From sequence record OQ411014.1: DNA of 64,000 nucleotides. One strand, written 5' to 3'. Below are positions 1 to 64,000 of this stretch, in pieces; the stretch's first letter is position 1; every line of letters starts with the position of its first letter. The notes beneath the pieces are model-generated. The model was not told where the DNA came from. It did no database searches and saw only the letters and a list, made by a program, of their open reading frames with translations. The translations under genes and the position numbers were made by a program.

Positions 1-576
1 CAACAAACCAGTGACCAGACCAGAATCAGAAACTGAAGCTACTGTTGGTTCGGAAGATTCCCACAGTACTGATTGGTTTGTAGCATCCTCTGGTGTGAAA
101 ATTGGCGTGAGTTGGTCAGTTTCACCTGTCTGAATAGAAGATGTTACTTTATTCAATGCAAGACCAGTAACATACACTGAACGATCACGTTGACTTGCAT
201 AAGAATTAAGATAAAATGATGAACCATCGCCTAGGATGATTTTATTTAAGAATAGTTTTATTGCAAAACCGACCAGTTCATCTTTTTCTGGATCATATAC
301 CTTAATACAAAATTTACCAGGGTCAAGTTTAGCAGCAAGTTCTTCATCGGTATCACTTAGCAATAACGGTTGTTTGTTCTTATCCAAAGCTGTTATTTGA
401 AGAAATTCATATAGTGAATCACCAGTTTTGGATTGCAAGTCAAACATGATAGTACTTCTCTGTTTTGATATATTAATAGTAGTTAGTTCTGTACCATCTT
501 TCAATACGGCAGCGTTGACATTTATACCCGAAATATCGAACGGAAATTGGTCGCGGCGAGCAATTGGTTTACCCAT
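1..576 (-). CDS. Ig-like (Big_2-type) domain protein, probable virion surface protein; partial, runs off the window
   Basis: Not in the ORF track. My translation from ATG 576 (SD AAGGAGG): MGKPIARRDQFPF...VTGLALNKVTSSIQTGETDQLTPIFTPEDATNQSVLWESSEPTVASVSDSGLVT, a typical Big_2 signature. TAAATA late motif at 607-612 on the minus strand. Confidence 0.72.
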   Translation of the reverse strand, partial: MGKPIARRDQFPFDISGINVNAAVLKDGTELTTINISKQRSTIMFDLQSKTGDSLYEFLQITALDKNKQPLLLSDTDEELAAKLDPGKFCIKVYDPEKDELVGFAIKLFLNKIILGDGSSFYLNSYASQRDRSVYVTGLALNKVTSSIQTGETDQLTPIFTPEDATNQSVLWESSEPTVASVSDSGLVTGLL

Positions 577-633
577 TGTAACCTCCTTATAGTTTACAAT
601 TTTAAATATTTATCCATAATGTGCTAAAAAAAC

Positions 634-663
634 TTGCACATTCCAAGATAATACTGATATAAT
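634..663 (+). promoter_or_regulatory. sigma70-type early promoter with extended -10
   Basis: TTGCAC-N18-TATAAT, with TG two bases upstream of the -10. Confidence 0.7.
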
Positions 664-716
664 AGACTCATCCAACGCGAAGTTGGTGTAAACAAACTAC
701 TAAGAGGACTTAGACA

Positions 717-1790
717 ATGAAAAACGAAAACGTATATGTATACATCGGACGCTTCCAGCCAGCACATAAAGGCCACGAAGCAGTACTTGAAAATGCAATC
801 AAAAAAGCTGACCGTGTTGTTATTCTAGTGGGTAGTGCTGAACAAGCTCGTTCCCCTAAGAACCCGTTCACCTTTGAAGAACGCCAAAAAGTACTGGACG
901 GTATCACAACTCGTCTTGCACAAGATGAATGGGCGAAAGGTCGCCGTGTGATGATCGACATCCTACCTGTACATGACTTCGTATACAACAACCAGAAATG
1001 GCTCATGGAAGTTCAAGAACAAGTTCGTTCCTGCACTAAAAGTGAAAACATTACTCTAACTGGTTGTCGTAAACATGGCGATGATAGTACTTTCTATCTT
1101 GAGTTCTTCCCTCAGTGGAATCAAGATTTCATTACAGAAACTACACAAGAAGATGTTGGTATCAATGCCACTCAACTACGTAACCAATTCTTCAGTACTA
1201 AACAAGTACCTGAACAAAATGTACTTACTCCTGAAACTGTAGAGTTCCTTGAGAAGTTCAGCGTAGAAAAGAAAGATGTACTAGATTACCTAGTGAAAGA
1301 ACATGCTTTTACTACAAAATATAAAGCAGACATGAAGAAACAACTACCATTTGACACAATCCCATTCCTGACTGGTGATAGTCTGATTGTCTGTGCAGGT
1401 CATGTTCTTGTAGGTATTCGTCGCTCTGAACCAGGCAAAGGTCAGTACTGTCTACCTGGTGGGTTCTTCGATGCATGGAAAGATAAAGATCAAGTTGATA
1501 CTGCTTTACGTGAACTCAAAGAAGAAACCAAAATTGATGTACCAATGAATAAACTACGCGGTTCTATTGAACGTGTAGAAGAGTTTGGTGACTTTGACCG
1601 TGACCCACGCTGGCGTGTAATCACTAAGTGCATCTACATCAAACTTGACGGTACTAAACTACCTAAAGTAAAAGGCTCAGATGATCTCAAAGGTTGCTTC
1701 TGGATGCCTATGACTGAAATTGCTAAAAATCGTGCTAACTTCTTTGTTGATCACGTTTCCATCATTGACACGTTCTTAGGAATCCTGTAA
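717..1790 (+). CDS. nadM: Bifunctional NMN adenylyltransferase / ADP-ribose Nudix pyrophosphatase (NadM-Nudix)
   Basis: GRFQPAHKGH (HxGH) and SPKNPFTFEER; C-terminal Nudix box LPGGF...RELKEET and RDPR. Confidence 0.93.
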   Translation: MKNENVYVYIGRFQPAHKGHEAVLENAIKKADRVVILVGSAEQARSPKNPFTFEERQKVLDGITTRLAQDEWAKGRRVMIDILPVHDFVYNNQKWLMEVQEQVRSCTKSENITLTGCRKHGDDSTFYLEFFPQWNQDFITETTQEDVGINATQLRNQFFSTKQVPEQNVLTPETVEFLEKFSVEKKDVLDYLVKEHAFTTKYKADMKKQLPFDTIPFLTGDSLIVCAGHVLVGIRRSEPGKGQYCLPGGFFDAWKDKDQVDTALRELKEETKIDVPMNKLRGSIERVEEFGDFDRDPRWRVITKCIYIKLDGTKLPKVKGSDDLKGCFWMPMTEIAKNRANFFVDHVSIIDTFLGIL

Positions 1791-1791
1791 T

Positions 1792-2331
1792 ATGAATGTA
1801 ATTTCTCTGACTCCAGGTTTGAAAGCAGACTTGGATGCAGTAAAGGAAAGTAAGTACAATAAGATAACTAGCTGTACTGAACTAATCTTGAGTACTGATG
1901 GTTATTCTGAATGTAATCAATTGTTCGTTGATGCACTTCAACACATTGATAAAAAACTGTATCTAACCGATTTTCTTTATCTTATTCAGAGAACGTGGAT
2001 TAGCAATGCACAAAACAGAAATCACCTGAATTCAGGTGAAAGTACTTCAAGCTATGGTTATTGGAAATATAACTTCGCTGGAGTATCATCGGATACTTTA
2101 TACATTACGAACTATGTTCCGTCTGGAAATATCAGAATTGTCGATTCAGTACAACATTATGAATATTATGATATTGACACGGAAAAGCCAAGTCTGTATA
2201 CTATATCCGATATCGTAATTAGAAATGAAAAGACATTGTTCAACATGGTATTTCCAACGACTACTAAACTGTTTTCGAAGGAATACATGAAGTTCACAAT
2301 TCCATTGTCTCTGATTATGAACAACCAATAA
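1792..2331 (+). CDS. Hypothetical protein between nadM and nampt
   Basis: 179-aa ORF coupled to the nadM stop (TAATATG). Confidence 0.7.
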   Translation: MNVISLTPGLKADLDAVKESKYNKITSCTELILSTDGYSECNQLFVDALQHIDKKLYLTDFLYLIQRTWISNAQNRNHLNSGESTSSYGYWKYNFAGVSSDTLYITNYVPSGNIRIVDSVQHYEYYDIDTEKPSLYTISDIVIRNEKTLFNMVFPTTTKLFSKEYMKFTIPLSLIMNNQ

Positions 2332-2379
2332 GAACGCGGAGTTCTTATATAACATCAACTACCAAAGAGGTAATATAAA

Positions 2380-3852
2380 ATGCAAAACGTAAATTTCATC
2401 CTAAACGCAGATAGTTACAAGCACTCTCATTTACTAATGATGAAAGAAGGTGTTCAAGCTCTTGAATCAAACATCATTGCTCGTAAACCATCTAAATTCA
2501 CCAGTCATGTAGTTATGATGGGTCTTCAGATTTTCGTTCAGGAATATCTGGATATCACAATTACTGCGGCTGATATCGATGAAGCAGAGATTGAAACAAA
2601 CGAACGTGGTGATGATTTTGACCGCGACTTCTGGGAACACATCGTGAATGTACACAAAGGTAAACTACCTTTACATATCCGTGCTATCCCTGAAGGTACA
2701 GTAGTTCCAGTTGGTATGCCGTTGGTTCGCTCCTTCAGTACTGACCCACGTACTATGGTACTCGCTAGTTTCGTCGAAACTCAATTACAACGTGCAATCT
2801 GGTTCCAAACTACTGTTGCATCTAATGCTCGCAGTATCAAGGAATTTCTTGCTGATACTATGGAACGTCATGCTGGTCATCGCTTTGTGGATTATCATCT
2901 ACATAACTTCGGCTGTCGTGGTGCAAGTTCCTATGAAACAGCAATGCTCGCAGGTGTAGCTCATGCCGCTCTATTCAGTGGCTCTGACTGCCTATTAGCA
3001 AACCGTAGTATCAAATACTACTACAATACTACTAAACCATATGTTAGTAGTGTTATGGCGAGTGAACACAGTGCTACATGTTCTAACTCCGATGCAGACA
3101 AGCGTGATGATTCAGCAATGGCGTTGAAGATGGTTCGCCTATGGGAAAAGAAAGTAGATAAGTTCATTGCTAATGGTTCAGTTGGTGCACCCCCAATTGT
3201 TTCTGTAGTAATCGATACTTATGATGCTTATCGCTTTGTTCGTGAGTTCATCGGTACTCGTCTAAAATCTACAATCGAAGAGATTGCAGCTAAATGTCCA
3301 AGTGCTAAACTAGTAATGCGTCCTGATAGTGGTAATCCACTAACTATGCCAATCGAAATCGTATCTATCCTTATGGAGAAATTCGGTTCAGTACTGAATG
3401 CTAATGGCATGAAAGTACTTCCATCTTTCATTGGTGTTCTTCAGGGCGACGGAGTTTCAGAAAGTTCAATCCGTGAAATCGTCCACAACCTAGAGAAAAA
3501 GAACTACTCTCTAGAGAATCTAATCTTTGGTATGGGTGGTAAAAACTCCCACGTCGAAGGTGGTCGTGATGCATATTCTTTCGCCCAGAAAGGTTGTGCA
3601 CAGCAACTAGCTGATGGTACTTGGGAAGATTTGTTCAAAGATCCTATTACTGACGTTGGGAAAAAATCCCTTCGTGGTCGTGTAACTACTTACTTGTGCA
3701 AAGAAAGTGGGAAGATGATGGCTGAACGAATCGAACTACAAGAAGTAAATCCTTTCTTAGAAGATATGATGGTTGACATTTTTGTAAATGGTGATATCAT
3801 GAATCTAAGCTCTTTTGATGATGTACGTGCTCGTGCGAACAAGGGATTGTAA
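2380..3852 (+). CDS. nadV: Nicotinamide phosphoribosyltransferase (Nampt/NadV)
   Basis: ADSYKHSH, HNFGCRG, ASEHS, IDTYD, RPDSG, GMGG, KDPITD..KKSLRG motifs. Confidence 0.95.
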   Translation: MQNVNFILNADSYKHSHLLMMKEGVQALESNIIARKPSKFTSHVVMMGLQIFVQEYLDITITAADIDEAEIETNERGDDFDRDFWEHIVNVHKGKLPLHIRAIPEGTVVPVGMPLVRSFSTDPRTMVLASFVETQLQRAIWFQTTVASNARSIKEFLADTMERHAGHRFVDYHLHNFGCRGASSYETAMLAGVAHAALFSGSDCLLANRSIKYYYNTTKPYVSSVMASEHSATCSNSDADKRDDSAMALKMVRLWEKKVDKFIANGSVGAPPIVSVVIDTYDAYRFVREFIGTRLKSTIEEIAAKCPSAKLVMRPDSGNPLTMPIEIVSILMEKFGSVLNANGMKVLPSFIGVLQGDGVSESSIREIVHNLEKKNYSLENLIFGMGGKNSHVEGGRDAYSFAQKGCAQQLADGTWEDLFKDPITDVGKKSLRGRVTTYLCKESGKMMAERIELQEVNPFLEDMMVDIFVNGDIMNLSSFDDVRARANKGL

Positions 3853-3859
3853 TATCAAT

Positions 3860-3884
3860 GGGGAGTCTTAGTACTCCCTTTTTT
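3860..3884 (+). terminator. Rho-independent terminator
   Basis: GGGAGT-cttagt-ACTCCC followed by a T run. Confidence 0.75.
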
Positions 3885-3895
3885 GCGAGGTTTAT

Positions 3896-4534
3896 ATGTG
3901 GTCTAAAGTAAAAGATAATCTAGATGCGTACATTATCCCACTACACGATGTGGTATGGCTACGAGATGAAGTACGTAAGGCAATGACCGAAGGTTATGCG
4001 TTTCCAGCAGAAGAAGATGAAATTCAAAAAGATGCATCAGTAGTTTCTGATGAAATGATTATCGGTTATCCAGATCCAGAAAATGAAAATATGTTCATGT
4101 TTGGATTCAAAGATGATGATTGTCTGGACGACCAAAGTATCATTGACCACATTACACATCGCTGTTGGGAAGATATTAGTGAAGCTGGTATTGTTTCATT
4201 TGGTGAAATGGAAAGTTTTTCAGCAGTTGTGTATAATGAAGATGTTCCAAATTTCCGTAAGCACAAGACAGAAGTGGATAACTTCCTAACTCATTTGATT
4301 GGTCGATCTATTGTTAGTGATGAGCCATCATTCCTCAATAACACTGCGGAATGTAAAGAATTCATCTTAGAACGATATGATTATGAAAATATGAAACGTA
4401 CTGCGACGAATAAGTGGGGCAACTTCAATTATCGTTTATTTGAAAATGATGAAGGAGATGTCGTGACAATCGTTACATACAATGCTAAACTGATCTCCTA
4501 CTATAACTTCAGATACAAAGACGAGGATCTATAA
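3896..4534 (+). CDS. Hypothetical acidic protein
   Basis: 212-aa ORF with SD GAGG. Confidence 0.75.
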   Translation: MWSKVKDNLDAYIIPLHDVVWLRDEVRKAMTEGYAFPAEEDEIQKDASVVSDEMIIGYPDPENENMFMFGFKDDDCLDDQSIIDHITHRCWEDISEAGIVSFGEMESFSAVVYNEDVPNFRKHKTEVDNFLTHLIGRSIVSDEPSFLNNTAECKEFILERYDYENMKRTATNKWGNFNYRLFENDEGDVVTIVTYNAKLISYYNFRYKDEDL

Positions 4535-4535
4535 A

Positions 4536-4748
4536 ATGGTTTTGACTTATCTTTTCATGTTCGGTATGTACGCAGTAACCACTGGTTGTGCATGGTTCCT
4601 GACTTCAATTACATTCATTGGTTGGGCCAATCGTGAAGGTAAAATCAAATACGGCTTGTGGTTCCGTGAGTTCAGTCCTTTTGTAGTACCACTATGGATT
4701 ACAACTATTGTAATTTATATTCTCATCCCAGTAGTATTCTTGGGTTGA
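4536..4748 (+). CDS. Small membrane protein (2 TM)
   Basis: Two hydrophobic segments; coupled start. Confidence 0.65.
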   Translation: MVLTYLFMFGMYAVTTGCAWFLTSITFIGWANREGKIKYGLWFREFSPFVVPLWITTIVIYILIPVVFLG

Positions 4749-4788
4749 CATTACAGTACTGTTCAAGATTTTCTAATAAGGATTATAT

Positions 4789-5391
4789 ATGACTTGTATT
4801 ATCGCTTTTACTGATGGTAAATCATCCTTCATCGCAGGTGACAAACTAGGTTCCAACGGCTTTACTAAATCAGTAATGGTTGAACCAAAAGTCTTTGAGA
4901 AAGAGTTTCATCGTGTTAGTACCAATGATGAAGGTACTGTGCGGACGCGTGAAACGATGGCACTCGGTTATACTACGTCATTTCGTATGGGACAACTTCT
5001 GTCTTACAATCTAGTACTGCCTGACCAAGATGCGAATCAATCCTTCAGTCAGTACCTGGTTCAGAAAGTAATTCCACTTATTCGTCATATGTTCAAAGAT
5101 GAATGGGGTGCACGTGATAGCTCACAAGATATTGGTGGTGGTCAGTTCATTATTCTGCATAACCACACTATCTACGAAGTTCAAGGTGACTTCTCAGTAC
5201 TGCAACCTAAGACACAAATTACTGCTGTAGGTTCAGGTACTTACCATGCAATTGCAGCTATGCAAGCACTACAAAGTGTTTCATCTGATACTAAGAAAGA
5301 TCTACTACATTACGTACCAACGATTTTTGATATTGTCAGTACTAATGTAACTTCAGTATCTGCTGAACATGATGTATTGCATTACAAATAA
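4789..5391 (+). CDS. Proteasome-beta/HslV-like Ntn-hydrolase (putative threonine peptidase)
   Basis: N-terminal M-T-C-I-I, IAGD, GYTTSFRMGQ, AVGSG: the Ntn T1 pattern. Confidence 0.62.
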   Translation: MTCIIAFTDGKSSFIAGDKLGSNGFTKSVMVEPKVFEKEFHRVSTNDEGTVRTRETMALGYTTSFRMGQLLSYNLVLPDQDANQSFSQYLVQKVIPLIRHMFKDEWGARDSSQDIGGGQFIILHNHTIYEVQGDFSVLQPKTQITAVGSGTYHAIAAMQALQSVSSDTKKDLLHYVPTIFDIVSTNVTSVSAEHDVLHYK

Positions 5392-5582
5392 TGGTTGATA
5401 TATTTTTCATTGTAATGATGATGCTTGGTGTATTCGGGTTGATTGCAATTACCCGAATCACTGATAGACCATACACAGATAACATTGAACGCGTTTGTAT
5501 GTTTCTACTAAGTACTATAATGTTGGTTATCGTTGGTGTAGTAGGTTCTATGTTTGCAGAACTAATTCTAATTGCGTACTGA
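5391..5582 (+). CDS. Small membrane protein (2 TM)
   Basis: Hydrophobic 63 aa; TAATG overlap. Confidence 0.6.
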   Translation: MVDIFFIVMMMLGVFGLIAITRITDRPYTDNIERVCMFLLSTIMLVIVGVVGSMFAELILIAY

Positions 5583-5605
5583 TGTACGCTTTTTAAGGAG
5601 TACTT

Positions 5606-5839
5606 ATGGACTTAGCAGATTTGGTTTATGTTGTATCGTTAGTACTGTACGGTATTTGTATAGTACTGACTATGTTAGAATGGAGTACTTGGAGTGATGG
5701 TTTCAAAGAACTAAATGGTGAGTTTACCTCTAAATACTATGCAATTAGTTATTTTATCATGAAGTTAGGTATGATTGGAATGTATGGTATTTTGGGATAT
5801 CTATTCTACTTCTTACCTGAACATATGAGATTATTTTAG
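5606..5839 (+). CDS. Small membrane protein (2 TM)
   Basis: Hydrophobic 77 aa; SD AAGGAG. Confidence 0.65.
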   Translation: MDLADLVYVVSLVLYGICIVLTMLEWSTWSDGFKELNGEFTSKYYAISYFIMKLGMIGMYGILGYLFYFLPEHMRLF

Positions 5840-5849
5840 GAGATATAAA

Positions 5850-6281
5850 ATGGCAGGAAAAGGATATTGCAGCCTAAAACTTGATAAAGCACAAGCAAAG
5901 GAATTGAAACGGATTTTAAAAATCGGTGGCGTTGAATGCTTAGACCCTTCGGATTTGCATTGTACTTTAATGTACGATGAAAGTAATCCTAACATCAAAA
6001 TGCTCAAGAACACAAAGACTTATAAAGCTAAAGTAACTGGTGTTAGTAAATTGGGTGATGCGATTGTATTGGATTTGGAATCCCCTGGCATCAAGAAACG
6101 TCATCAGGAATTGAAGAATGCTGGTTATAAGCACTCATTCCCTGAATTGAAAATTCATATGAGCATCAACTACGATCCAAAAAGTACTGATAAGGATTTA
6201 CTAGAACTCTTTATCAAATTGAAGGGTATTCCTTCAGTACTGATATTTGGTAATGAAAAATTTGAATCTCTAAAGCCGTAA
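5850..6281 (+). CDS. acb1: 2H phosphoesterase, Acb1 (T4 gp57B)-like anti-CBASS nuclease
   Basis: LHCT and IHMS catalytic motifs; the pattern VLDLES..IKKRH...GYKHSF..LKIHMSINY parallels T4 Acb1 as I recall it. Confidence 0.78.
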   Translation: MAGKGYCSLKLDKAQAKELKRILKIGGVECLDPSDLHCTLMYDESNPNIKMLKNTKTYKAKVTGVSKLGDAIVLDLESPGIKKRHQELKNAGYKHSFPELKIHMSINYDPKSTDKDLLELFIKLKGIPSVLIFGNEKFESLKP

Positions 6282-6291: not shown

Positions 6292-7050
6292 ATGGACGTG
6301 AATAAATTTCTTGACAACAAAGGACAAAAGCGTCTGTTAGTACTAACTGGTGCGGGTTTCAGTGCGGAATCTGGAGTTAGTACATTTCGTGATGCAGAAG
6401 ATGCCCTATGGGAAGGTGTGAAGATTAACGATGTATGTAACATTGCGAGCTTAGGCTTTAAGTACGCACAAGTACATGCATTCTACAACACACTAAGAAC
6501 TATCATCAAGGACAAAGAGCCTAACGAAGCACACTATGAAATTAGCGTTATGGAGTCAATGTACGGGGATAACTTCCTACACATGACTGCTAATATCGAT
6601 GATTTATATGAGCGTGCTGGTGGCACTGCTATGCACCTTCATGGCAACATCAAAGAAGTCATTGAGAACTATTCAATGGCACATAACGACTTTACAGTAC
6701 TGGATGTTGGATATGAAGTTTATATTCCAAAGGAAGGTGTATTTGCTAAACCTAATGTAGTATTCATTGGTGAATCAGAGCGTTATGTGAATAACCAGCG
6801 TATTCCGTTGTATGAAGAACGAAATAAAGTACTGGCATCCTTGACAGACTTAGATACCGTTGTTATCATTGGTTCATCGGATACAATCCTGAAGTGGAGT
6901 TCGTTGGTTGGTTTAGGCACACCAGCTTATACCATCAACATCAACACAAGAAAGAATGACACTGACTGGGCGTTCGATAAGAAGATTTACAAGCCAGTAA
7001 CTAAAGCGTTATTGGAATTGAGGGAGTTAGTTCTTACACGGATGGGATAG
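6292..7050 (+). CDS. Sir2/CobB-family NAD-dependent deacylase lacking the zinc-binding cysteines
   Basis: TGAGFSAESGVSTFRD, NIDDLYERAG, HLHG, KPNVVFIGE, IGSS. Confidence 0.9.
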   Translation: MDVNKFLDNKGQKRLLVLTGAGFSAESGVSTFRDAEDALWEGVKINDVCNIASLGFKYAQVHAFYNTLRTIIKDKEPNEAHYEISVMESMYGDNFLHMTANIDDLYERAGGTAMHLHGNIKEVIENYSMAHNDFTVLDVGYEVYIPKEGVFAKPNVVFIGESERYVNNQRIPLYEERNKVLASLTDLDTVVIIGSSDTILKWSSLVGLGTPAYTININTRKNDTDWAFDKKIYKPVTKALLELRELVLTRMG

Positions 7051-7059
7051 GAGTGAGTT

Positions 7060-7614
7060 ATGGATTTTACAGAGATACCATTCGGACAACGCAGTGAAAG
7101 ATTTGACTGTGCGTTCGTTTGGATCTACGCTAAGAATTGCACACCATACAAGGATTATCCATATAATGATATTCCTAACGTATCTTTAGTACTGACAGAG
7201 TTACGCTTTGATGGTCTAATGGGTGCGGTTGGTGGAGCAGTTGAGGATGATGATCCTTCATTGGAAGTGGCAGTGCAACGTGAAGCCTTAGAGGAAATAA
7301 ACTTTTCTCTTGACATTACTAATCTGAAACCGTTATTATCATTACGTTCCCCATACGGAGCACATAACCATAGTTTCTCGTACGAAGTACAGTACGATGA
7401 GCTACTAGAGATTCGGAACAACGCATACAAAGGTGCTCACTTCAGTGCTGAAAATGCGGGTGTAAATCTGATTCACGTATGTCGCTATACGAAGGGAAGA
7501 GGGAACGAATGTGGTTACAATAACATTCTTACACAGAATTTTATTGGCACATCCAAACTGGAACTAGAGCGTTTAGTTCATAATGAAAATTTACTAATAA
7601 ATTACCTTGCATAA
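7060..7614 (+). CDS. Nudix hydrolase
   Basis: RFDGLMGAVGGAVE...QREALEEINF Nudix box. Confidence 0.7.
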   Translation: MDFTEIPFGQRSERFDCAFVWIYAKNCTPYKDYPYNDIPNVSLVLTELRFDGLMGAVGGAVEDDDPSLEVAVQREALEEINFSLDITNLKPLLSLRSPYGAHNHSFSYEVQYDELLEIRNNAYKGAHFSAENAGVNLIHVCRYTKGRGNECGYNNILTQNFIGTSKLELERLVHNENLLINYLA

Positions 7615-28666: not shown

Positions 28667-28671
28667 TATTT

Positions 28672-28701
28672 TTGAGATGAATGAAAATTTTGTGATATAA
28701 T
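28672..28701 (+). promoter_or_regulatory. Early promoter (TTGAGA-N18-TATAAT) upstream of the non-coding region
   Basis: TTGAGA...TGTGATATAAT. Confidence 0.72.
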
Positions 28702-28707
28702 GTATAG

Positions 28708-29210: not shown

Positions 29211-29237
29211 AAACCTCGTCAAGTATAATATGAATAG

Positions 29238-29332: not shown

Positions 29333-29354
29333 CGAAACATTACAGGAGCTTATC

Positions 29355-36071: not shown

Positions 36072-37308
36072 AGGTCGCAAACTCGTAACAATTCGTAAAA
36101 TCAATGCAATTGATGCAATTGAAGGTGCAGATCTGATTGTCAAAGCAACTGTTGACGGTTGGGATGTAGTTGTGAAGAAAGATGAATTCAACGTTGGGGA
36201 TTACTGTGTATTCTTCGAAATCGATTCATTCCTTCCAGTACAGACACCACAATTCGCATTCTTGGCGGGTTCAGGCTGTAAACTCGATGAACAGAATGTA
36301 GAACGTTTCCGTCTACGTACTCGTAAACTTCGCGGGGTAGTCTCTCAAGGCTTGGCTCTACCAGTATCTCTATTTGAGGCAGTACTGGAAGCTATTGACG
36401 AAGCTGGTGGTCATCACCCTGACTCGTACACTACAACGGCACGTGAAGAACTCCTAGTGAGTCTAGAGGCGAATCGTGAAGGCATTGAGCAATTCCTCAA
36501 TGTAACCAAATACGAGCGTCCTGATGAGCGTAATGGCGGTACTGGTGCATCTAAGTGCAAAGCTGCTGGTAACTTCCCTATCGTCATTCCTAAGACTGAT
36601 GAAGACCGTATTCAGAACGTAATGGGTAAGTACTCTCAGACTATGAAAGGTGTTGCATTCCGTAAATCACTGAAACTGGATGGTTCTAGCCAGACAATTG
36701 CATTCATTAGCAATCCTGATTTCTTTGTAGATAAAGTTGATGAAGAAGTCCGTGCATGGAATGAAGAGACTCAAGAACTTGAAGTTGTTGAAGTGAAGCC
36801 ATACCCGTTCCAATGGGAAGATGGTCAGGTAGCAGTATGTTCTCGCAATCTTGCGTTGAAATTTGATGCTGAATCTCACTTCTGGAAAGCAGCACTGAAA
36901 GATGATATTCCAGCACGTCTGAAAGAGTACTGTGTTCGTAATGACCGCCAACTAGCACTACAAGGCGAAGTAATGGGTCCTGGTATCCAAGGGAACCGTG
37001 AAGAACTGACCGAACATCAATTCTACGTATTCCGTATTTGGGATATTGATAATAAATGTTTCCTTGATGATGGTGATTTCTTGACACTATCTGCACTACT
37101 GGGATTGACTACAGTACCGCAAGGTGATATCGTGTACTTCTTCGATGAATACACTTCTATCAAAGAAGCATTGGCATCTGCTGACCACGCATCTATCAAG
37201 CATAAGATCGCGGAAGGCGATGTGTTCAAAAGTGTATCTAAAGTGAATGGTGTTACTGTACACTTCAAGGTAATCAACAACAAATTCTTGCTCAAATGTG
37301 AGGACTAA
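36055..37308 (+). CDS. ATP-dependent RNA ligase, DRB0094/Rnl2-like with N-terminal OB domain
   Basis: Start moved to ATG 36055; RKLVTIRKI..GAD, KLDGSS, LQGE..GPGIQGN, EGDVFK, FKVINNKFL. Confidence 0.88.
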   Translation: MELVTEGRKLVTIRKINAIDAIEGADLIVKATVDGWDVVVKKDEFNVGDYCVFFEIDSFLPVQTPQFAFLAGSGCKLDEQNVERFRLRTRKLRGVVSQGLALPVSLFEAVLEAIDEAGGHHPDSYTTTAREELLVSLEANREGIEQFLNVTKYERPDERNGGTGASKCKAAGNFPIVIPKTDEDRIQNVMGKYSQTMKGVAFRKSLKLDGSSQTIAFISNPDFFVDKVDEEVRAWNEETQELEVVEVKPYPFQWEDGQVAVCSRNLALKFDAESHFWKAALKDDIPARLKEYCVRNDRQLALQGEVMGPGIQGNREELTEHQFYVFRIWDIDNKCFLDDGDFLTLSALLGLTTVPQGDIVYFFDEYTSIKEALASADHASIKHKIAEGDVFKSVSKVNGVTVHFKVINNKFLLKCED

Positions 37309-37916
37309 TGAAGAAAAAATTCGGCGTGGCGATAAATGACGCCGACTATGCTGTAACATCATATGACGATGCTGGTAAACGCCAGCATTGTCCCTTTTAT
37401 CGAAGATGGGCGAGTATGATAAATCGATGTTATGGTGATGTTGGTGCAACATACACTGAATCCTATGTATGTGATGAATGGTTAACCTTCTCTAACTTTA
37501 AGAGATGGATGGAAACACAAAAATGGGAAGGTATGGAGTTGGACAAAGATTTACTTTATATCAACAATAAGGAATATGGCCCAAATACATGTTTATTTTT
37601 ACCAAAGGTTATTAATTCACTATTCGTTGATAGTAAATCGAGCCGTGGTACTAATCCGATTGGTGTATCTTTTGAAAAACGTCGATTGAAATATGAAGCA
37701 TATATATCAATTGATAATAAGAAAAAACATCTTGGATATTTTGATAACCCAATTGATGCACATGTAAAATGGCAACATGCAAAATTGAAAGTATTGGAAG
37801 ATTTCATGAAAACGTTATCTGACCCTATACATATACAAATTGTAGATTTGCGAATCAACAAGCTAAAGAATGATATACAATCAAATATCATAACCGAATC
37901 TTTACATCATTTCTAA
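37308..37916 (+). mobile_element. Free-standing HNH-type homing endonuclease-like gene with AP2 domain
   Basis: WASMINRC, VCDEWLTFSNF, LDKD, C-terminal GV...YEAYI..KKHLGYF..AH; atypical codon usage. Confidence 0.75.
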
Positions 37917-46468: not shown

Positions 46469-46557
46469 AGTACTTTTACAGTACTGAAGTTTCAATACAA
46501 TACTAGAGATGCACTATAATGGTGTCATCTCTTTTCTTTTATATAAAGGAGTTATAT

Positions 46558-47202: not shown

Positions 47203-47234
47203 TCCCTTTCAGTACATTAGATTTAATCCTCCAA

Positions 47235-47240
47235 TAAATA
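47235..47240 (+). promoter_or_regulatory. Late promoter motif upstream of the tail sheath gene
   Basis: AATAAATAAC. Confidence 0.6.
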
Positions 47241-47285
47241 ACATTATACGAATATTCTATAATACCAATTTTTTGGAGGATTAAA

Positions 47286-49931
47286 ATGGCTGATCTATTA
47301 TCACCAGGTGTAAGTGTAACAGTCACTGATGAGTCAATGAGCGGTGCTTCTGCTCCAGGGACTGTCCCACTTATCATCATTGCAACTGCACAAGACAAAT
47401 TGGTTCCAGGCAGCACATCTGTTGCACCAGGGACTCTCAAAGCGAACGCTGGTAAACTACAGCTACTAACTTCACAAAAAAATGCCCTTGACGTATTCGG
47501 GACACCTATTTTTCAGAAACATTTAGGTTCAGTAGTTCAAGGCGACGAATTAAACGAATACGGCTTACATGCTGCTTATTCATATTTGGGAATTGCAAAC
47601 CGTGCTTATGTAGTACGTGCTGACATCGACCTAGCACAGCTAGCACCAACTGGTACTGCACCAACTGGCCCTGTTACCAACGGTAAACTATGGTTAGATA
47701 CTACTGCAAGTCAAGTTGAAGCATATGTTGCTAAGAAAGATGACCCACAATCATTCTACGACTGGCAACTAAAACCAGTACGCATCGTTAGTGCGGCTGA
47801 TATTGCTGATGTTGATACTATTGGTCTAAACGTTGATGACCTAGTACTACGTTACAACCCAGCGAATGGTCAACTACTAATGTACAAATTTTCTGCTGCT
47901 GGTCTAGTTCAAGTTGAAACTTACCTATCACCAATCAACAAAGTACCATCAGGTATTGAATACAATGAAGGTGATATTTGGATTCGTGATGGTTTCACTA
48001 AATCTGGTTCTAACTACTTCGGTACTCGTTTTGTTATTAAACGTTATGCTTCTCTAACTCGCGTATGGCAGAATGTTGATACCTTTACTGGTACAAGTTT
48101 CTATGAAATTGAATCTAAAACTGGTGTAATGTCGTCTTCTTACATCACTGCACTATTCGATTATGATAGTAATAGTTTCTCCTTCTATATGCAACGTGCT
48201 TCATTACCTACCGTTACCGCTGGTGCAGTTCCAGTTGGTCAATCTTCGGTAAACACTGCTGCTGTTGATGGTTTCTTAACTGTTAATTATCTAAATAAAT
48301 CCGTTAAAGTACTAGCAGTACTACAAGGTCAACTAATTAATGCTGCTGTTATCATTGAAAATTTGAATAAGAGTTCAGTACTAATTAACGCAGGTTTCAC
48401 ATTCACTGGAACACAAGATGTTGTCATTACTAACCGTAATGGATATAGTTTTAAAGTGAGTCAATCAGACGAAGTGATTTTTAGCCAACAAGAACTCAAG
48501 AAACTAACTCAAGATAGCAGTAACTATGCACTAGTTAACGTTAACAACCTAGTAACTTCAGCAACCGAACCACGTGCTGTTGCACCAGAAGGTACTTACT
48601 GGTATGACTTTAGTAACTCTGACAATCTTGAAGTAACTCTTTATACTGCTAATACCAGTACTGAAGATTGGGATCTAGTAATTGCTAGTGACAAGTACAT
48701 CCAAGTTGATGAACCTGCTGCTGACCGTTCTTTCTGGGTTCTACCACTATCTCAAGGTATTGATGGTTATGAGTTCTATCGTAACGTAAATGGTGAGTGG
48801 ATTAAACTAGATCCAGCAGACCAAAGTACTCTAAACGGTATGATTTACGAAGACTTCAATGACGAAGTACCAAGTGCTAACCTATACCAAAACGGTATGC
48901 TTGCAATTGACCTAGGCAATACTGAAGGTGTTGTTAAACAAATGGTTAATGGTAAGTGGGTAGTAGTAAGTGGTGTTGCTATTGATGGTTCTGGTCTATT
49001 TGGTCGTCATGCACAACGTCAAATGATTGTTGAAGCTATGGCATCTGTTATCGTTAGCAACGAAGCGATTCGTTCTGAGACTGTCGATTTCAACCTAGCG
49101 GTTGCTCCTGGTTATGTTGAACTACTAGATGAACTAGTAACTCTAAACACTGACCGTAAAGAAACATCTTTCTTGATTACTGATGTTCCAGCACGTTTGA
49201 AACCTTCCAGTACTGACGTACAAGAATGGGCTACTAACGCTAACAACGCTCCAAGTAACGGTGATATCGGTCGTGTAACTGCATACGATTACGCTGCACA
49301 ATACATGGGTTGGTGCTTAGGTACTAACGTTGATGGTGAAGAAGTTGCTATTCCTGGTTCTTCTGTTGCACTACGTACCTATGCGTACAGTGACAGTGTT
49401 TCTTATGTATGGTATCCACCAGCAGGTACTGCACGTGGTGTTGTTTCCAACGCTGCTTCAGTAGGCTTCATCAATGATGAAGGCGAATATGAGCCAGTAG
49501 TTTACAACCAAGGCCAACGTGATATCATGTATATCAACAAGATTAACCCGATTGCAATGCGTCCAAACCGTGGTCTACTAGTTTATGGTGATAAGACACT
49601 AACTGCGAACGAAACTTCAGCACTAGCGAACGTAAACGTAGCACGTCTAATCGTATACATTCGTCGTCAACTAGACATTCTTGCTGAACCATTCCTATTC
49701 CGTCTAAACACCCCAAGTACTCGTCAGGAGTTCGCTGGTGTAGTGAACAGCTTCCTAGCAGAAATCGTTCAACTAAATGGCCTATACGACTTTACTGTTG
49801 TGTGTGATGAATCAAACAACACCCCAACTCGTATTGACCGTACTGAACTATGGATGGATATTGCGATTCAACCAACTCGTACAATTAACTACATTTATGT
49901 ACCAATTCGTATCGAGAAAACTCAAGCATAA
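47286..49931 (+). CDS. Contractile tail sheath protein (T4 gp18-like)
   Basis: LLSPGVSVTVTDES, WYPPAGTARG, KINPI, YGDKT, NVARL, VCDESNNTPTRID, IQPTRTINYI. Confidence 0.93.
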   Translation: MADLLSPGVSVTVTDESMSGASAPGTVPLIIIATAQDKLVPGSTSVAPGTLKANAGKLQLLTSQKNALDVFGTPIFQKHLGSVVQGDELNEYGLHAAYSYLGIANRAYVVRADIDLAQLAPTGTAPTGPVTNGKLWLDTTASQVEAYVAKKDDPQSFYDWQLKPVRIVSAADIADVDTIGLNVDDLVLRYNPANGQLLMYKFSAAGLVQVETYLSPINKVPSGIEYNEGDIWIRDGFTKSGSNYFGTRFVIKRYASLTRVWQNVDTFTGTSFYEIESKTGVMSSSYITALFDYDSNSFSFYMQRASLPTVTAGAVPVGQSSVNTAAVDGFLTVNYLNKSVKVLAVLQGQLINAAVIIENLNKSSVLINAGFTFTGTQDVVITNRNGYSFKVSQSDEVIFSQQELKKLTQDSSNYALVNVNNLVTSATEPRAVAPEGTYWYDFSNSDNLEVTLYTANTSTEDWDLVIASDKYIQVDEPAADRSFWVLPLSQGIDGYEFYRNVNGEWIKLDPADQSTLNGMIYEDFNDEVPSANLYQNGMLAIDLGNTEGVVKQMVNGKWVVVSGVAIDGSGLFGRHAQRQMIVEAMASVIVSNEAIRSETVDFNLAVAPGYVELLDELVTLNTDRKETSFLITDVPARLKPSSTDVQEWATNANNAPSNGDIGRVTAYDYAAQYMGWCLGTNVDGEEVAIPGSSVALRTYAYSDSVSYVWYPPAGTARGVVSNAASVGFINDEGEYEPVVYNQGQRDIMYINKINPIAMRPNRGLLVYGDKTLTANETSALANVNVARLIVYIRRQLDILAEPFLFRLNTPSTRQEFAGVVNSFLAEIVQLNGLYDFTVVCDESNNTPTRIDRTELWMDIAIQPTRTINYIYVPIRIEKTQA

Positions 49932-50741: not shown

Positions 50742-50766
50742 TAATAAAAGTACTTTTCAGTACTAC

Positions 50767-59840: not shown

Positions 59841-61253
59841 ATGAGTAAATTCAATAATTTGTCTACTAAACTTCCCGATTCAGTTTTGCAAGAATGTAAT
59901 GAACGTATGGTACTAGCTCGTACTTCACTGATGCTCTCTAAACCATTCTTTGGTGTTTTGGCATCTCGTCTTCGCCCAGTACCGAATGATACTTGGTGTC
60001 GTACGATGGCAGTAGATGGCAAACACTTGTACTATAACGTAGAATTCGTTATGGGTTTACAAGACCAAACTAAACGTGCACAATACGAAGAAGCACTAAA
60101 AGAATCAATCGACGATATCAGTACTGAACAAATCAATGACGTACTGAACGGTCTATCTGACCAGAACCTGATTGCTGTACTGTGTCATGAAATTCTTCAC
60201 TGTGCTTATGACCACTTCTTGCGTCGTGGTATGCGTGACCCACAACTGTTCAACAAAGCTGCTGACTATGCAATCAACCAGATTCTAGTTCGTGAAAACA
60301 TTGGTAAGATTCAGTCTTCTTGGTTGTACGACAAGAAATATGACGGAATGACCGCTGAAGAAATCTATGTTCTTCTTGAAGAAGAGAAGAAGAAAGAAGA
60401 GCAAGAAAACGGTGGTGGTGATGGCGACGGTGATGGTTCCGATGACCAAGATGGCGATGGTGACGGAAACAGCAACGGTGGTGGTAAGAAGAAAGGTAAG
60501 AAAGGTAAAGGCGGCACAATTGACCAGCATGACGTACCACAAGAAGGTGATGGTGAAGTAAGTGATGCCAAGCGTCGTGAATATATGGAAGATTTCAAAA
60601 CTGCAATGATGAACGCAGCACGTGCTGGTGGTACTCCAGCAGAAATCGAACGTATGATTGACTCCTTCACTAAACCAAAAATCGACTGGCGTTCTAAACT
60701 ACAACGTACTATGCGTTCTTGCATGAAGTCCGATGTAATTTTCTCTAACCCAAGTCGTCGTTCTTGGAGTACGGGCTTCGGTCACAGTGGTTCTTTCTTT
60801 GGTTCTCCTATCTTCCCAGGACTGAAACCAGATGAAGATATTGATATTGCAATTGCACTTGATGCGTCAGGTTCTATCAGTAATGATATGTTGCGTGACT
60901 TCATCAGTGAAGTGATGGGAATCACCAAACAGTTCAAACAGTTCAAGATTCGTATTATGACTTTTGATACTAAGGTTTATACTGTTCGTGATTATAAAAC
61001 TGGTGAAGAGAAGAAGATTCTAGAATATCCAGTTCATGGAGGTGGTGGTACTGATTTCCAAGCAGTTTGGGATCATATGCGTGATGACAACTACCGTCCA
61101 AAACAACTCGTAATGTTCACTGATGGTGAGCCGTGGGATTCCTGGGGTGACGAAAACTATTGTAAGACTCTTTTCGTAATCCACTCCAACCCTGAAAAGA
61201 TTGCACCATTCGGTGAAACCGTACACTACGAGTACGAAGCGAAGCAACACTAA
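59841..61253 (+). CDS. DUF2201-type HExxH metallopeptidase-like + vWA domain protein
   Basis: TMAVDGKHLYYN, HEILH, N.AADYAINQ, DASGS MIDAS, GGGGTDF, FTDG. Confidence 0.88.
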   Translation: MSKFNNLSTKLPDSVLQECNERMVLARTSLMLSKPFFGVLASRLRPVPNDTWCRTMAVDGKHLYYNVEFVMGLQDQTKRAQYEEALKESIDDISTEQINDVLNGLSDQNLIAVLCHEILHCAYDHFLRRGMRDPQLFNKAADYAINQILVRENIGKIQSSWLYDKKYDGMTAEEIYVLLEEEKKKEEQENGGGDGDGDGSDDQDGDGDGNSNGGGKKKGKKGKGGTIDQHDVPQEGDGEVSDAKRREYMEDFKTAMMNAARAGGTPAEIERMIDSFTKPKIDWRSKLQRTMRSCMKSDVIFSNPSRRSWSTGFGHSGSFFGSPIFPGLKPDEDIDIAIALDASGSISNDMLRDFISEVMGITKQFKQFKIRIMTFDTKVYTVRDYKTGEEKKILEYPVHGGGGTDFQAVWDHMRDDNYRPKQLVMFTDGEPWDSWGDENYCKTLFVIHSNPEKIAPFGETVHYEYEAKQH

Positions 61254-61259
61254 TATAAA

Positions 61260-61292
61260 TAATGCGTAAGTTCAGGATGTTCTTACGCATTT
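61260..61292 (+). terminator. Rho-independent terminator
   Basis: AATGCGTAAG...CTTACGCATT plus T run. Confidence 0.75.
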
Positions 61293-61296
61293 TATT

Positions 61297-61326
61297 TTGA
61301 GATATCATAAGAAATTGTGATATAAT
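61297..61326 (+). promoter_or_regulatory. Early promoter (TTGAGA-N18-TATAAT)
   Basis: TTGAGA...TGTGATATAAT. Confidence 0.72.
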
Positions 61327-61358
61327 ATGAGTACAATAAACAATACATGGAGTGTATT

Positions 61359-61589
61359 ATGAGTGAACAAAACCAAGAACAACTAAGCATTGAAATTGAA
61401 GATATCATCAATGCAACCAAAATCATGGAAGCAGCAATCAAAGCGGGTGCTTTCGGTGTTGAAGACTTAGTAAAAGTTGCACCAATTGTTGACCGTTTCA
61501 TCAAGTTCAGTAATGCAATTATTGAACAACACAACAAAAATGTTGAAGCTCAAGAAGCGGCACAAAATGGAGGTACTGACCATGAGTAA
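61359..61589 (+). CDS. Hypothetical protein
   Basis: Start ATG 61359 (SD GGAG). Confidence 0.68.
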   Translation: MSEQNQEQLSIEIEDIINATKIMEAAIKAGAFGVEDLVKVAPIVDRFIKFSNAIIEQHNKNVEAQEAAQNGGTDHE

Positions 61590-62232
61590 GATTATCCGTC
61601 ACCAAGGTGTAGTTCGTAGTACTGGTTCCCGTGTGTTCGTTCTATGGCGACACATTCCTGATGATATCAACCACTGCCTAGTCATTTATCGTGACTCTAT
61701 TCCTGAAGTTTATATGCATACAGTGAATGAACTTGTAATGAATCAAGGTCAGAAAAGCGTTGAACTATGGGAAGTGATGGATAAAGTTGGTTATCTTGAT
61801 AATCGTAAAATGCTTGATGTTCTACACAATCTAGGTTATATTCGTAAGCAACGTACATGTGACATTGACATGCACGTGGGTGGTGGTGCGAAAGTTGCAC
61901 TCGACGAACTAAATGCTAGTATTCTTGAAGAGCGTATCCATCAAGATGGTAAAGTCAAAGACTTCAACCCATTTGATGCAAATGCACAAGACAGTACTGC
62001 TGAACGTGGTACAATCGTTGATAAACTAATTGCAGATGCAGAACAGTATCTACGTCTTCATGAAGAAAATCTTGAACGTGCTTATAACATCGACCCATCT
62101 CGTCGTCCAGTAGTTGAAGCGGCTGGTGAAGAAGATGATACCACATTCTCTATCGTTCTTGAGAAAGGCGTTTCCCAAGCGAAAGCAATTGAAATCGTCA
62201 AAAAAGCACTAGCAGCACAAAAGGCAAAATAA
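61582..62232 (+). CDS. Hypothetical protein
   Basis: Start moved to ATG 61582 (SD GGAGG). Confidence 0.72.
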   Translation: MSKIIRHQGVVRSTGSRVFVLWRHIPDDINHCLVIYRDSIPEVYMHTVNELVMNQGQKSVELWEVMDKVGYLDNRKMLDVLHNLGYIRKQRTCDIDMHVGGGAKVALDELNASILEERIHQDGKVKDFNPFDANAQDSTAERGTIVDKLIADAEQYLRLHEENLERAYNIDPSRRPVVEAAGEEDDTTFSIVLEKGVSQAKAIEIVKKALAAQKAK

Positions 62233-62233
62233 T

Positions 62234-62530
62234 ATGACTCGTGATGAAATCATTCAAATGATTCTCACTGAGCGTAATCGTCAAACAGAGAATCCAAACA
62301 CTGTTTCTGACTTACACAAAACCAAAAATGATTGGGCTGCTTTGGCAGCCTATTATTTGTTTGAAGGTGCAAGTCGTTCCGATAAACATGTATCTTTCGA
62401 AGAGTTTCGTAGTTCTCTAGTTCAAACTGCTGCCGTCATTATTGCAGCACTAGAAACCAGCTATGCTCATGAGAATGAAACGGTTCGAGATTTACTATCT
62501 CAACTGGAAAATAAAGATGACAAGCAATGA
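62234..62530 (+). CDS. MazG-like (all-alpha NTP pyrophosphohydrolase-like) small protein
   Basis: ERNRQ...DW...LVQTAAVIIAALE. Confidence 0.5.
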   Translation: MTRDEIIQMILTERNRQTENPNTVSDLHKTKNDWAALAAYYLFEGASRSDKHVSFEEFRSSLVQTAAVIIAALETSYAHENETVRDLLSQLENKDDKQ

Positions 62531-63107
62531 GTTACAACTTGCTCTTAGTGATCTAGATAATGTATGTTATAGTGGCGGTGCTAAAGGGGCAGACCGCCTC
62601 TTTGGTATCTGGGCTACTGAAAATGGTTTTCAAGAAGTACATTTCTCTTTCAAGAAACATAATTATGTTGTAGATGAAAGTACTATCATTGAAATTCCAG
62701 ATTCGATTCTACAGGATAGTACTGTAATCGATAAACTCAAGAAAGCGAACTACTCTTTAGGAAGAAGTATTCCAAAGAAAGGTTCTTATGTTTATAATCT
62801 ACTTGCACGTAATACGTTTCAAGTTCTTCTTACTGAACGTGTGTATTGCATCAGTCCTTTAGCATCACCAACAACCGTTTCAGGTGGTACAGCATGGGCT
62901 GTTCAAATGTACATTGACCAGTACGAGAATCCTGTAATTTACGGTTATGACCCACTTCGGAAAGAAGCATATCAGTACTGTAATACTAAGAAAGAATTCA
63001 TTACAGTTGATTCTGTTCCAGCACCTACTGGTAAATGGACAGGTATTGGTTCACGTGAAACTACAGAGAATCACATGCAAGCATTCGTTAGTTACTTCAG
63101 GAGTTGA
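62517..63107 (+). CDS. SLOG/YspA-like nucleotide-binding protein
   Basis: SGGAKGAD, RNTFQV, SGGTAWAV, WTGIGSR. Confidence 0.6.
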   Translation: MTSNELQLALSDLDNVCYSGGAKGADRLFGIWATENGFQEVHFSFKKHNYVVDESTIIEIPDSILQDSTVIDKLKKANYSLGRSIPKKGSYVYNLLARNTFQVLLTERVYCISPLASPTTVSGGTAWAVQMYIDQYENPVIYGYDPLRKEAYQYCNTKKEFITVDSVPAPTGKWTGIGSRETTENHMQAFVSYFRS

Positions 63108-63373
63108 TGATGAGTGATGAGTGTGATAATTGCGATTACCGTTATGAATCAGGCCACAGAGACGGATATGAGCAAGGTTGTAAAGACTCCAGTTCGGAAA
63201 ATTACGAACAAGGTTATAAAGATGCAAAAGACGAAGGTGCTAGAGAATTAGATGATCAATTAGCGAACATGAGTTCGAACTTCTCTAGTGTAATACGAGA
63301 TTTAGTTGCAAGGAATAAGCAACTACAGCAAGAAATTTATGAGATAAGGAAATCCAATGCAACAGCTTCATGA
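63104..63373 (+). CDS. Hypothetical protein with GYxxG repeats
   Basis: GHRDGYEQG...YEQGYKDA then coiled coil. Confidence 0.6.
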
Positions 63374-64000
63374 TTTATATTCAAAAGTACTAAACGAAGG
63401 TGTCACATCAGAAGACCGTACTGGTACTGGTACTATCAAACTGATTGGTCAACAAATGCGTTTCGATTTGAAAGAAGGCTTCCCAGCGACAACAACGAAA
63501 CGTCTAGCATGGAAAGCAATGACTTCTGAACTGTTGTGGTTCCTCGAAGGTTCACAAAACGAACGTCGTTTATGTGAAATTCTACATGGTACTACTGACC
63601 CAGAGAAACGTACAATCTGGACTGGTAACTATGAGAATCAAGGACAGAAACTTGGATACGTCAATGGCAATCTCGGCCCTGTTTATGGTAAACAATGGCG
63701 TGAGTGGGAAGATGTAGTTATCCTTCCTGGTGTGTACACTGAAGTAGTAAAACATACTGAAATGGGTTACAATCTAGTTGAACGTACTACTAGTGGTATG
63801 TATGTAATGCAACGTACTATTGACCAGATTGCAGTACTGGTTGATGGTTTGAAGAATGATCCAAACGGTCGCCGCCACATCCTATCTGCATGGAACGTTG
63901 GTGATTTAGATAAGATGGCACTACCACCTTGTCATAGTTTTGTTCAGTTCTTTGTGGTTGATGGTAAGCTAAGTTGCTCACTATATCAACGCAGTGCAGA
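63357..64000 (+). CDS. thyA: Thymidylate synthase, partial (runs off the window)
   Basis: Not in the ORF track; my translation: [60 protein letters not shown]. Confidence 0.95.

Follow-up and report, generated by a model that had tools for sequence, protein, structure and literature searches.

AGTACT, a highly iterated palindrome in Escherichia phage EJP2 and other RaK2-like jumbo phages

Highly iterated palindromes are already known from cyanobacteria, and arrays of regulator sites from phages. In mycobacteriophage L5, the gp71 stoperators comprise about 30 asymmetric 13-bp sites, which are intergenic and share one orientation. SPO1 TF1 and phi29 p6 are abundant phage proteins that bind their own genome over host DNA and repress early promoters overlapping their sites; the cue is hydroxymethyluracil for TF1, and the shape and supercoiling of the DNA for p6. 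The antitoxins YefM and Phd are small dimers that occupy operators with a TGTACA core, in which two hexamers are placed about one helical turn apart over the promoter. Here we analyze the palindrome AGTACT in a 64-kb stretch of DNA (hereafter the window, to which positions refer unless stated otherwise), which is 100% identical to nucleotides 62001-126000 of OQ411014.1, Escherichia phage EJP2. EJP2 is a virulent jumbo myovirus of 349,185 bp, filed under Asteriusvirus, and its whole genome was included in the analysis as eight loci (L001-L008). We find that AGTACT is selected at the DNA level rather than being a product of composition. Full-text searches and the papers on EJP2, CBB, RaK2, Sharanji, Hallingskeid and comparative jumbo phages yielded neither the AGTACT excess nor the absence of GCGC that we also describe below.

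Abundance, coding context and conservation of AGTACT

Within the window, AGTACT occurs 244 times against 21.0 expected (11.6-fold; about one site per 262 bp), its extended form CAGTACTG 83 times against 0.76 (109-fold) and the tetramer GTAC 598 times against 221 (2.7-fold). The whole EJP2 genome contains 1312 AGTACT against 116 expected (11.3-fold; one per 266 bp), 425 CAGTACTG against 4.1 (104-fold; one per 822 bp) and 3362 GTAC against 1199, and the half-extended words CAGTAC and GTACTG are enriched to the same degree as the core. An earlier reading of this DNA from its letters alone (the sequence-only reading) had described the palindrome as iterated throughout the genome and independent of reading frame, citing 22 AGTACT and 6 CAGTACTG in positions 1-6000, a density of about 4 per kb at 46.4-48 kb, and sites in all three frames of nadM. 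Our recount of the first segment is identical, the second (46400-48000) holds 6 sites, and nadM has five, spread over all three frames. The description also holds at full scale, as the density is 3.8 per kb in coding and 3.5 per kb in non-coding sequence, and the genic sites of the whole genome are distributed over the frames AGT-ACT (571), xxA-GTA-CTx (409) and xAG-TAC-Txx (179), with CAGTACTG likewise found in all three. AGTACT is the sole strongly enriched 6-bp palindrome of the window, the runner-up reaching 2.4-fold. GC-rich palindromes (GCGC, GGCC, CCGG, CGCG) and also GATC are depleted in the window, in agreement with the picture of a phage that otherwise purges its palindromes. Avoidance of restriction sites would deplete the target, whereas AGTACT is enriched 11-fold instead.

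The sequence preference is symmetric and extends beyond the hexamer. The flanks of AGTACT mirror each other to ±8 bp, although the genes of the region are all encoded on the same strand. In EJP2, 52% of the sites have C at -1 / G at +1, T is preferred at -3 and -4 and A at -7 and -8, while G at -1 is the rarest flank (7% of EJP2 sites; 5-13% across these phages). The perfect 12-bp palindrome TTCAGTACTGAA is the commonest 12-mer of the EJP2 genome with 35 copies, and perfect 12-mers number 73 where 49 would be expected if the two halves were independent. Flank information amounts to at most about 0.1 bit outside ±1 bp, and because the flanks are uninformative past about 8 bp, AGTACT has to be regarded as a sequence word instead of a repeat element. 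A dispersed repeat or mobile element was accordingly rejected, as the copies share no extended flanks, and only the approximately 35 early promoters described below are true repeats. The spacing of sites is near-Poisson (coefficient of variation 0.98), except that sites 9-11 bp from each other form a surplus of pairs (42 genome-wide, where about 15 would be expected). All nine classes of one-mismatch neighbors have observed/expected ratios of 0.97-2.6, so that none is depleted; their mild enrichment is what decaying or weak sites would produce.

Genes were taken from the deposited annotation for the 98 complete coding sequences (CDS) of the window and, for the remaining genome, from a simple open reading frame (ORF) caller, which recovers 93 of those 98. 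For the window CDS, synonymous-codon shuffling predicts 57 ± 6 AGTACT (z = 28) and codon permutation 30 ± 5.6, against 226 observed. Over all EJP2 ORFs, synonymous shuffling predicts 313 ± 15 against 1159 observed, z ranging from 28 to 56 across the synonymous shuffles from window to genome. A dicodon null (first-order codon Markov) over all ORFs leads to an expectation of 223 sites in the frame xxA-GTA-CTx and 108 in xAG-TAC-Txx, where 409 and 179 are observed; in the AGT-ACT frame it is uninformative, because the count is fixed by construction. The excess beyond protein sequence proposed by the earlier reading thus survives all three null models (the dicodon model in its informative frames), by which an artefact of codons, dicodons or composition is rejected. 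None of the outcomes that this reading had named as refuting its proposal was observed.

The motif has moved codon choice and even the dipeptide content of EJP2 proteins. Ser-Thr dipeptides are written AGT-ACT in 64% of cases, compared with 16% from codon usage (571 against 147 expected), and are themselves over-used (892 against 540 expected; Thr-Ser 554), as are Val-Leu dipeptides (881 against 612 expected; Leu-Val 555). TAC accounts for 86% of Tyr codons in motif-compatible contexts and 37% elsewhere, and C is the last base of 56% of the codons that precede AGT-ACT, compared with 17% of all codons. Two of the six tRNA genes of EJP2 (L006:7102-7191 and L006:8451-8540, both outside the window) read AGY serine codons, and one of them has an unusual anticodon, ACU, which pairs exactly with AGU. 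Mainly owing to the motif, AGT is used more than any other Ser codon (32%), and the tRNA set may therefore compensate motif-driven codon use.

Individual AGTACT sites outlast other hexamers. When the three phages 121Q, ph0011 and BF17 (84-87% identity) are aligned together, 58-83% of the sites are kept between pairs, compared with 36-49% for all or same-composition hexamers; 21 sites are common to all three phages, and 22 occur in one alone. Erwinia phage Hallingskeid is the closest relative of EJP2; in seven genes orthologous between the two, with about 74% nucleotide identity, 15 of the 26 EJP2 sites have the same codon position in both, compared with about 16% for a hexamer under no constraint, and the Hallingskeid orthologue of nadM retains four of five. 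A codon alignment of the tail-sheath gene from 15 phages contains one site common to all 15, two found in 11 and many that are lineage-specific. Because positional retention exceeds that of other hexamers, purifying selection or an equivalent restoring force acts on the sites, with ongoing gain and loss.

The enrichment is clade-wide rather than specific to EJP2, which lay beyond the knowledge of the sequence-only reading and emerged from the comparison with related jumbo phages that it had suggested. With the tail-sheath protein as query, 29 loci were retrieved from IMG/VR; relatives were sampled as pieces of about 11-38 kb and E. coli K-12 as one 50-kb sample. All phages with at least 65% tail-sheath identity have AGTACT enriched 5-8-fold in the tail-sheath (late-gene) region, and the range over all RaK2-like jumbo phages examined is 5-11-fold. 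The AGTACT-rich loci presumably include Serratia BF, Pectobacterium CBB, Cronobacter GAP32, Yersinia fHe-Yen9-04, Klebsiella RaK2 and E. coli 121Q. In 38.5 kb of Hallingskeid there are 128 AGTACT and 49 CAGTACTG, with C at -1 in 61% and no GCGC. Loci with at most 49% sheath identity show neither AGTACT enrichment nor GCGC loss, aside from L025 (IMGVR_UViG_3300027985_000659; 13 kb, 39% sheath identity), where AGTACT is enriched 4-fold, T is preferred at -1 and GCGC is normal, so both traits can occur separately. The base at -1 follows phage lineage, being C in EJP2, Hallingskeid and the 121Q group and A in BF, CBB and others, and such lineage-dependent flanks would fit a reader that evolved together with its sites. 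A host-specific flank preference was rejected, as the Erwinia phage Hallingskeid has the C/G flanks of EJP2.

The unrelated coliphage outra (24 kb, similar G+C) has 0 AGTACT against 7.9 expected, on which ground a general benefit of AGTACT in coliphages was rejected. The E. coli K-12 sample contains 3 AGTACT against 11.6 expected (about 0.06 per kb) and 342 GCGC (6.8 per kb); the AGTACT density of EJP2, 3.8 per kb, is about 60 times that of this host sample. Outside the RaK2-like clade, AGTACT is seemingly avoided in both outra and the K-12 sample.

AGTACT in early promoters and a candidate reader

The ends of the EJP2 genome contain about 35 strong sigma70-type promoters of the form AAAA-AGTACT-TGCAC-AGTACT-GAATAAAGCG-TATAAT-GTTTTA, in which two AGTACT 11 bp apart flank the -35 hexamer on both sides. 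Promoters were picked by a simple sequence pattern, and a site was counted if it lay no more than 35 bp 5' of the -10 hexamer. By this measure, at least one AGTACT is present in 29 of 36 early promoter-like sequences of EJP2 (19% of random windows from the same region), 16 of 17 in G17 (19%), 16 of 18 in SP27 (17%) and 11 of 12 in Hallingskeid (18%). A palindrome at a fixed place in the RNA polymerase footprint, as an operator would be, is thus found in 81-94% of cases in four phages from three lineages. In G17, SP27 and Hallingskeid, the homologous early region is denser still, with 6.3-6.7 AGTACT per kb, about 20-fold, and its promoters carry the site too. Relative to the -10 hexamer, the promoter sites occupy only the offsets -27, -16/-17 and -7, which are about one helical turn apart, and the favored offset differs by lineage. 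Sites that stay within the polymerase footprint while exchanging positions along one helical face would have the look of repressor operators. A search of IMG/VR for the exact double-site promoter pattern returned only ten unrelated single matches.

Each of the approximately 35 near-identical promoters (GCGTATAATGTTTTA) is followed by a small ORF, and they lie about 300 bp apart, in L007:26000-39185 and L008:1-9000, outside the window. The early region of EJP2 has about 80% DNA identity to 121Q-/G17-like phages; the initial 20 kb of the window, by contrast, resembles other phages only in patches of 72-79%. This difference suggests an exchange of the early module.

We tentatively favor, at somewhat less than an even chance, the explanation that AGTACT, with TTCAGTACTGAA as its optimum, is the putative recognition site of a two-fold symmetric, dimeric DNA-binding factor and is kept dense by selection. 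This binding-site model is preferred because the 12-bp palindromic consensus, purifying selection on the sites and their fixed placement in early promoters come together. The candidate factor would most likely be encoded by the RaK2-like jumbo phages themselves. At early promoters, it could occlude RNA polymerase and thereby shut off or tune early transcription. The approximately 1250 intragenic copies might serve to load the factor preferentially on phage DNA over host DNA, and the loaded factor may then label the DNA as the phage's own or package it as phage-specific chromatin, comparable to SPO1 TF1 or phi29 p6. We give each of these roles less weight than the binding-site model as a whole. 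If such a reader exists, these phages are a tractable example in which a virus writes an address label at about 1300 places of its genome, strongly enough to alter the amino acids of its proteins, and the identity of the reader would reveal a new layer of early-gene control and DNA organization in jumbo phages.

Several points weigh against this model. Biased repair would also conserve sites, the promoter offsets could partly reflect one duplicated promoter cassette or the places where promoters tolerate the hexamer, and any role of the intragenic sites is pure conjecture. Pfam scans covered all 472 unannotated EJP2 ORFs, and the matches listed include no helix-turn-helix (HTH), ribbon-helix-helix or Phd/YefM family, although a small reader of beta-sheet or HTH type can easily escape profile searches; nor is a TF1/HU-like or p6-like protein among them. 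Searches of ten early proteins conserved in three lineages against PHROGs and, with relaxed thresholds, Pfam produced nothing informative. The sequence-only reading had proposed binding sites of a genome-organizing protein as one possible meaning of the palindrome and a search for a DNA-binding or GTAC/AGTACT methyltransferase gene as a check: the binding sites remain the best fit, in view of palindrome, selection and promoter placement, whereas the Pfam matches listed contain neither kind of gene.

Absence of GCGC and competing explanations

GCGC is absent from the window (0 against 85 expected) and from the entire 349-kb EJP2 genome (0, where 441 would be expected and the synonymous shuffle gives 262 ± 12), and every RaK2-like relative sampled has 0 as well (L009-L022, L026-L028, L033, L035, L048, L049, L054-L056). 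Other CG-rich 4-mers are depleted in EJP2 yet present. The total loss of GCGC across hosts hints at a nuclease directed against GCGC and encoded by the phages, or at some constraint no less lethal. To our knowledge, RaK2-like jumbo phages have neither a phage nucleus nor the hypermodified bases of T-even phages. It is conceivable, if doubtful, that AGTACT as a positive and GCGC as a negative mark form a genome-wide sequence code by which these phages tell their own from host DNA. One phage protein would then bind AGTACT, organizing and regulating phage DNA and switching off early promoters, and a second would destroy GCGC-containing DNA. If true, this would be a new kind of system in viruses, and an identified AGTACT reader, together with the loss of GCGC, would make the long-standing question of how such phages discriminate between own and host DNA directly testable. 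The density of AGTACT and the absence of GCGC also provide a simple metagenome signature for this phage group, and ScaI and HhaI-type enzymes could be used as diagnostics for the DNA of these phages.

Among the explanations that compete with a binding site, AGTACT could be the target of a phage DNA enzyme, such as a site-specific nickase or endonuclease, the type II topoisomerase of the phage, or a factor that acts in recombination or packaging, with dense sites seeding recombination-dependent replication, decatenation or processing of the 350-kb genome. Palindromic sites of 6-8 bp are typical for dimeric nucleases and type II enzymes, the sites are under selection, and EJP2 encodes a T4-type topoisomerase, gp46/47, an endonuclease VII-like protein, two MUG113/T5orf172 (GIY-YIG-like) proteins and a PD-(D/E)XK protein. 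We nevertheless consider an enzyme target unlikely, as it leaves the fixed early-promoter positions unexplained and as distant relatives do not show the enrichment, although they would be expected to share topoisomerase and recombination genes, T4-type phages being expected to carry the same ones. The Pfam matches listed for the 472 ORFs include no restriction-enzyme family such as RE_ScaI, and an AGTACT-specific methyltransferase or ScaI-like enzyme was rejected on these scans. Published nanopore work comparing native with amplified DNA of Hallingskeid, which is as rich in AGTACT as EJP2, reports modification only at GATC and CCWGG and no nicks, which were seen in that study only in an unrelated phage.

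The same data bear on a HIP1-like origin, in which AGTACT would be modified and a repair of very-short-patch (VSP) type or a gene-conversion bias would generate its abundance by mutation rather than selection. Abundance and frame-independence resemble those of cyanobacterial HIP1, two phage DNA methyltransferases are present, and biased repair would yield site retention, too. However, VSP-type repair should deplete the one-mismatch precursors, which is not the case in any of the nine classes, and a mutational drive would not produce three fixed promoter offsets. The only recognizable DNA methyltransferases of EJP2 are a Dam-type enzyme (PF05869) and a C5 cytosine enzyme with a catalytic half like M.HhaI and Dnmt3, and no Vsr-like family is among the Pfam matches listed. 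Because no neighbor is depleted, only Dam and C5 enzymes are found and Hallingskeid is modified at GATC and CCWGG alone, a HIP1-style drive by methylation and repair, which the sequence-only reading had suggested by analogy, is unsupported and appears to us quite improbable.

We see a similarly slim chance that AGTACT is read by a host protein conserved in Enterobacterales, a nucleoid-associated factor or regulator hijacked by the phage, which might in this way stop the host from dividing or have its early promoters driven before phage proteins exist. All AGTACT-rich phages seen infect Enterobacterales, early promoters must function with host factors alone, and SlmA is an obvious candidate, because its site GTGAGTACTCAC shares the AGTACT core. 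Against a host reader, the flank preference tracks phage lineage and not host, with Hallingskeid having C like EJP2, while outra is devoid of AGTACT and the E. coli sample is depleted. SlmA has been described to require G1, T2, a purine at position 3 (R3), A4 and G5, whereas G at -1 is the rarest flank in the phages. Its hijacking was rejected: the site GTRAGYRCTYAC needs G1, T2, A4 and G5, the EJP2 consensus has T and C at positions 1 and 3, and a single match resembling the SlmA site (SBS-like) is found in the 349 kb of EJP2.

A function at the RNA level, in which the self-complementary word (CAGUACUG) pairs between polycistronic transcripts or is read by an RNA-binding or RNA-cleaving protein, is very improbable indeed, for although nearly the whole genome is transcribed, the palindrome is present in mRNA regardless of coding strand and symmetric flanks would also be expected from selection on RNA-RNA pairing, the promoter sites at -27 to -7 precede the transcription start, a duplex of 8-12 bp is weak for long-range pairing and the intergenic density is equal.

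The features of the window that were examined individually are collected in Table 1.

Table 1. Coordinates of AGTACT sites and associated features in the 64-kb window of EJP2.
Feature	Position	Strand	Remarks
AGTACT population	1..64000		244 sites, 83 of them CAGTACTG; equal density in and between genes
nadM (nicotinamide-nucleotide adenylyltransferase)	717..1790	+	AGTACT at 782, 890, 1086, 1194 and 1444; all three frames
Perfect TTCAGTACTGAA copy	3387..3398		Other window copies start at 12275, 17906, 29490, 32718, 35544 and 56977
ORF labelled HNH by the sequence-only reading	37308..37916	+	0 AGTACT; no Pfam match
Intergenic AGTACT pair, 11 bp apart (AAAGTACTTTTACAGTACTGAA)	46469..46485		Arrangement as around the -35 hexamer of early promoters
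Tail-sheath gene	47286..49931	+	8 AGTACT sites; used for the 15-phage codon alignment
Intergenic AGTACT pair, 10 bp apart	50749..50764		Directly 3' of the tail-sheath gene, 5' of a terminator-like hairpin
Longest AGTACT-free stretch of the window	60126..61617		1498 bp between site starts; allowed by near-Poisson spacing

The lack of AGTACT in the ORF labelled HNH, a foreign-looking gene to the sequence-only reading, had been regarded there as no more than suggestive. Its zero count is correct and is not significant (2.2 expected, P about 0.11), and the HNH identity is unconfirmed, with no Pfam match at E <= 0.01. No EJP2 ORF is a significant outlier in site count, and the site-free ORF therefore carries no weight. 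A stretch of 688 bp at 28667-29354 has no annotated gene and contains two AGTACT (28998 and 29242), and a scan of the window against Rfam gave no match. The E. coli Chi octamer GCTGGTGG occurs in the EJP2 genome 27 times on the + strand (about 1.7 expected) and 10 times on the - strand (about 1.4 expected), 22 copies being located in ORFs against 5.4 ± 1.8 under the synonymous shuffle, and the Chi-like sub-words CTGGTG, GCTGGT and TGGTGG are among the most enriched hexamers of the window. The hypothetical ORFs of EJP2 include an Acb1 anti-CBASS homologue (Pfam E = 1.8e-17; genome 29.6-68.3 kb) and, at genome positions 6561-7154, an early protein that resembles protein kinases (Pfam E = 5.7e-6), which, alongside genes for NAD salvage, Sir2, Nudix, Macro and ADP-ribosylglycohydrolase proteins, are likely parts of a counter-defense arsenal.

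Comparison with known systems

HIP1 of cyanobacteria (GCGATCGC) is, like AGTACT, a hyper-abundant short palindrome which is found in all frames and between genes, is shared among relatives with turnover of copies and has no established function. AGTACT exceeds about one copy per kb above composition and extends over all frames and non-coding sequence beyond codon and dicodon usage, as is typical of HIP1. HIP1, however, contains targets of methyltransferases (GATC, CGATCG), whereas no cognate enzyme or modification is indicated for AGTACT, whose core is apparently no target of the phage's own methyltransferases (for EJP2 itself, the evidence on this is indirect). AGTACT moreover belongs to a clade of virulent phages and not to a cellular chromosome, and it has a fixed position in promoters. 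The system may thus inform why highly iterated palindromes exist.

The DUS of Neisseria, the USS of Haemophilus and Chi are likewise short words that reach about one copy per kb or more by selection, lie within genes and alter peptides; they flag DNA as 'self' for a protein machine. Unlike AGTACT, these words are asymmetric and act in transformation or RecBCD control of cellular genomes.

Two other systems share the core or the arrangement of the site. The SlmA site is a 12-bp palindrome with an AGTACT core as well, recognized at many places of the chromosome by a dimer of the TetR family, yet its required G1 and R3 are not preferred in EJP2, where G at -1 is avoided. The operators of YefM/Phd resemble the phage promoters in their GTAC-centered hexamer palindromes, paired about one turn apart, but they occur at a single locus per genome, and no Phd/YefM protein is among the EJP2 Pfam matches listed.

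Phage regulators offer the remaining parallels. The L5 stoperators repeat the site of one repressor through the genome, beyond promoters, for global control of transcription, whereas the approximately 1300 sites of EJP2 are palindromic, lie mostly within coding sequence and belong to a virulent phage. SPO1 TF1 and phi29 p6, the nearest analogues in function known to us, differ from the proposed reader in what they recognize: the discriminator for the AGTACT phages would be an iterated sequence word.

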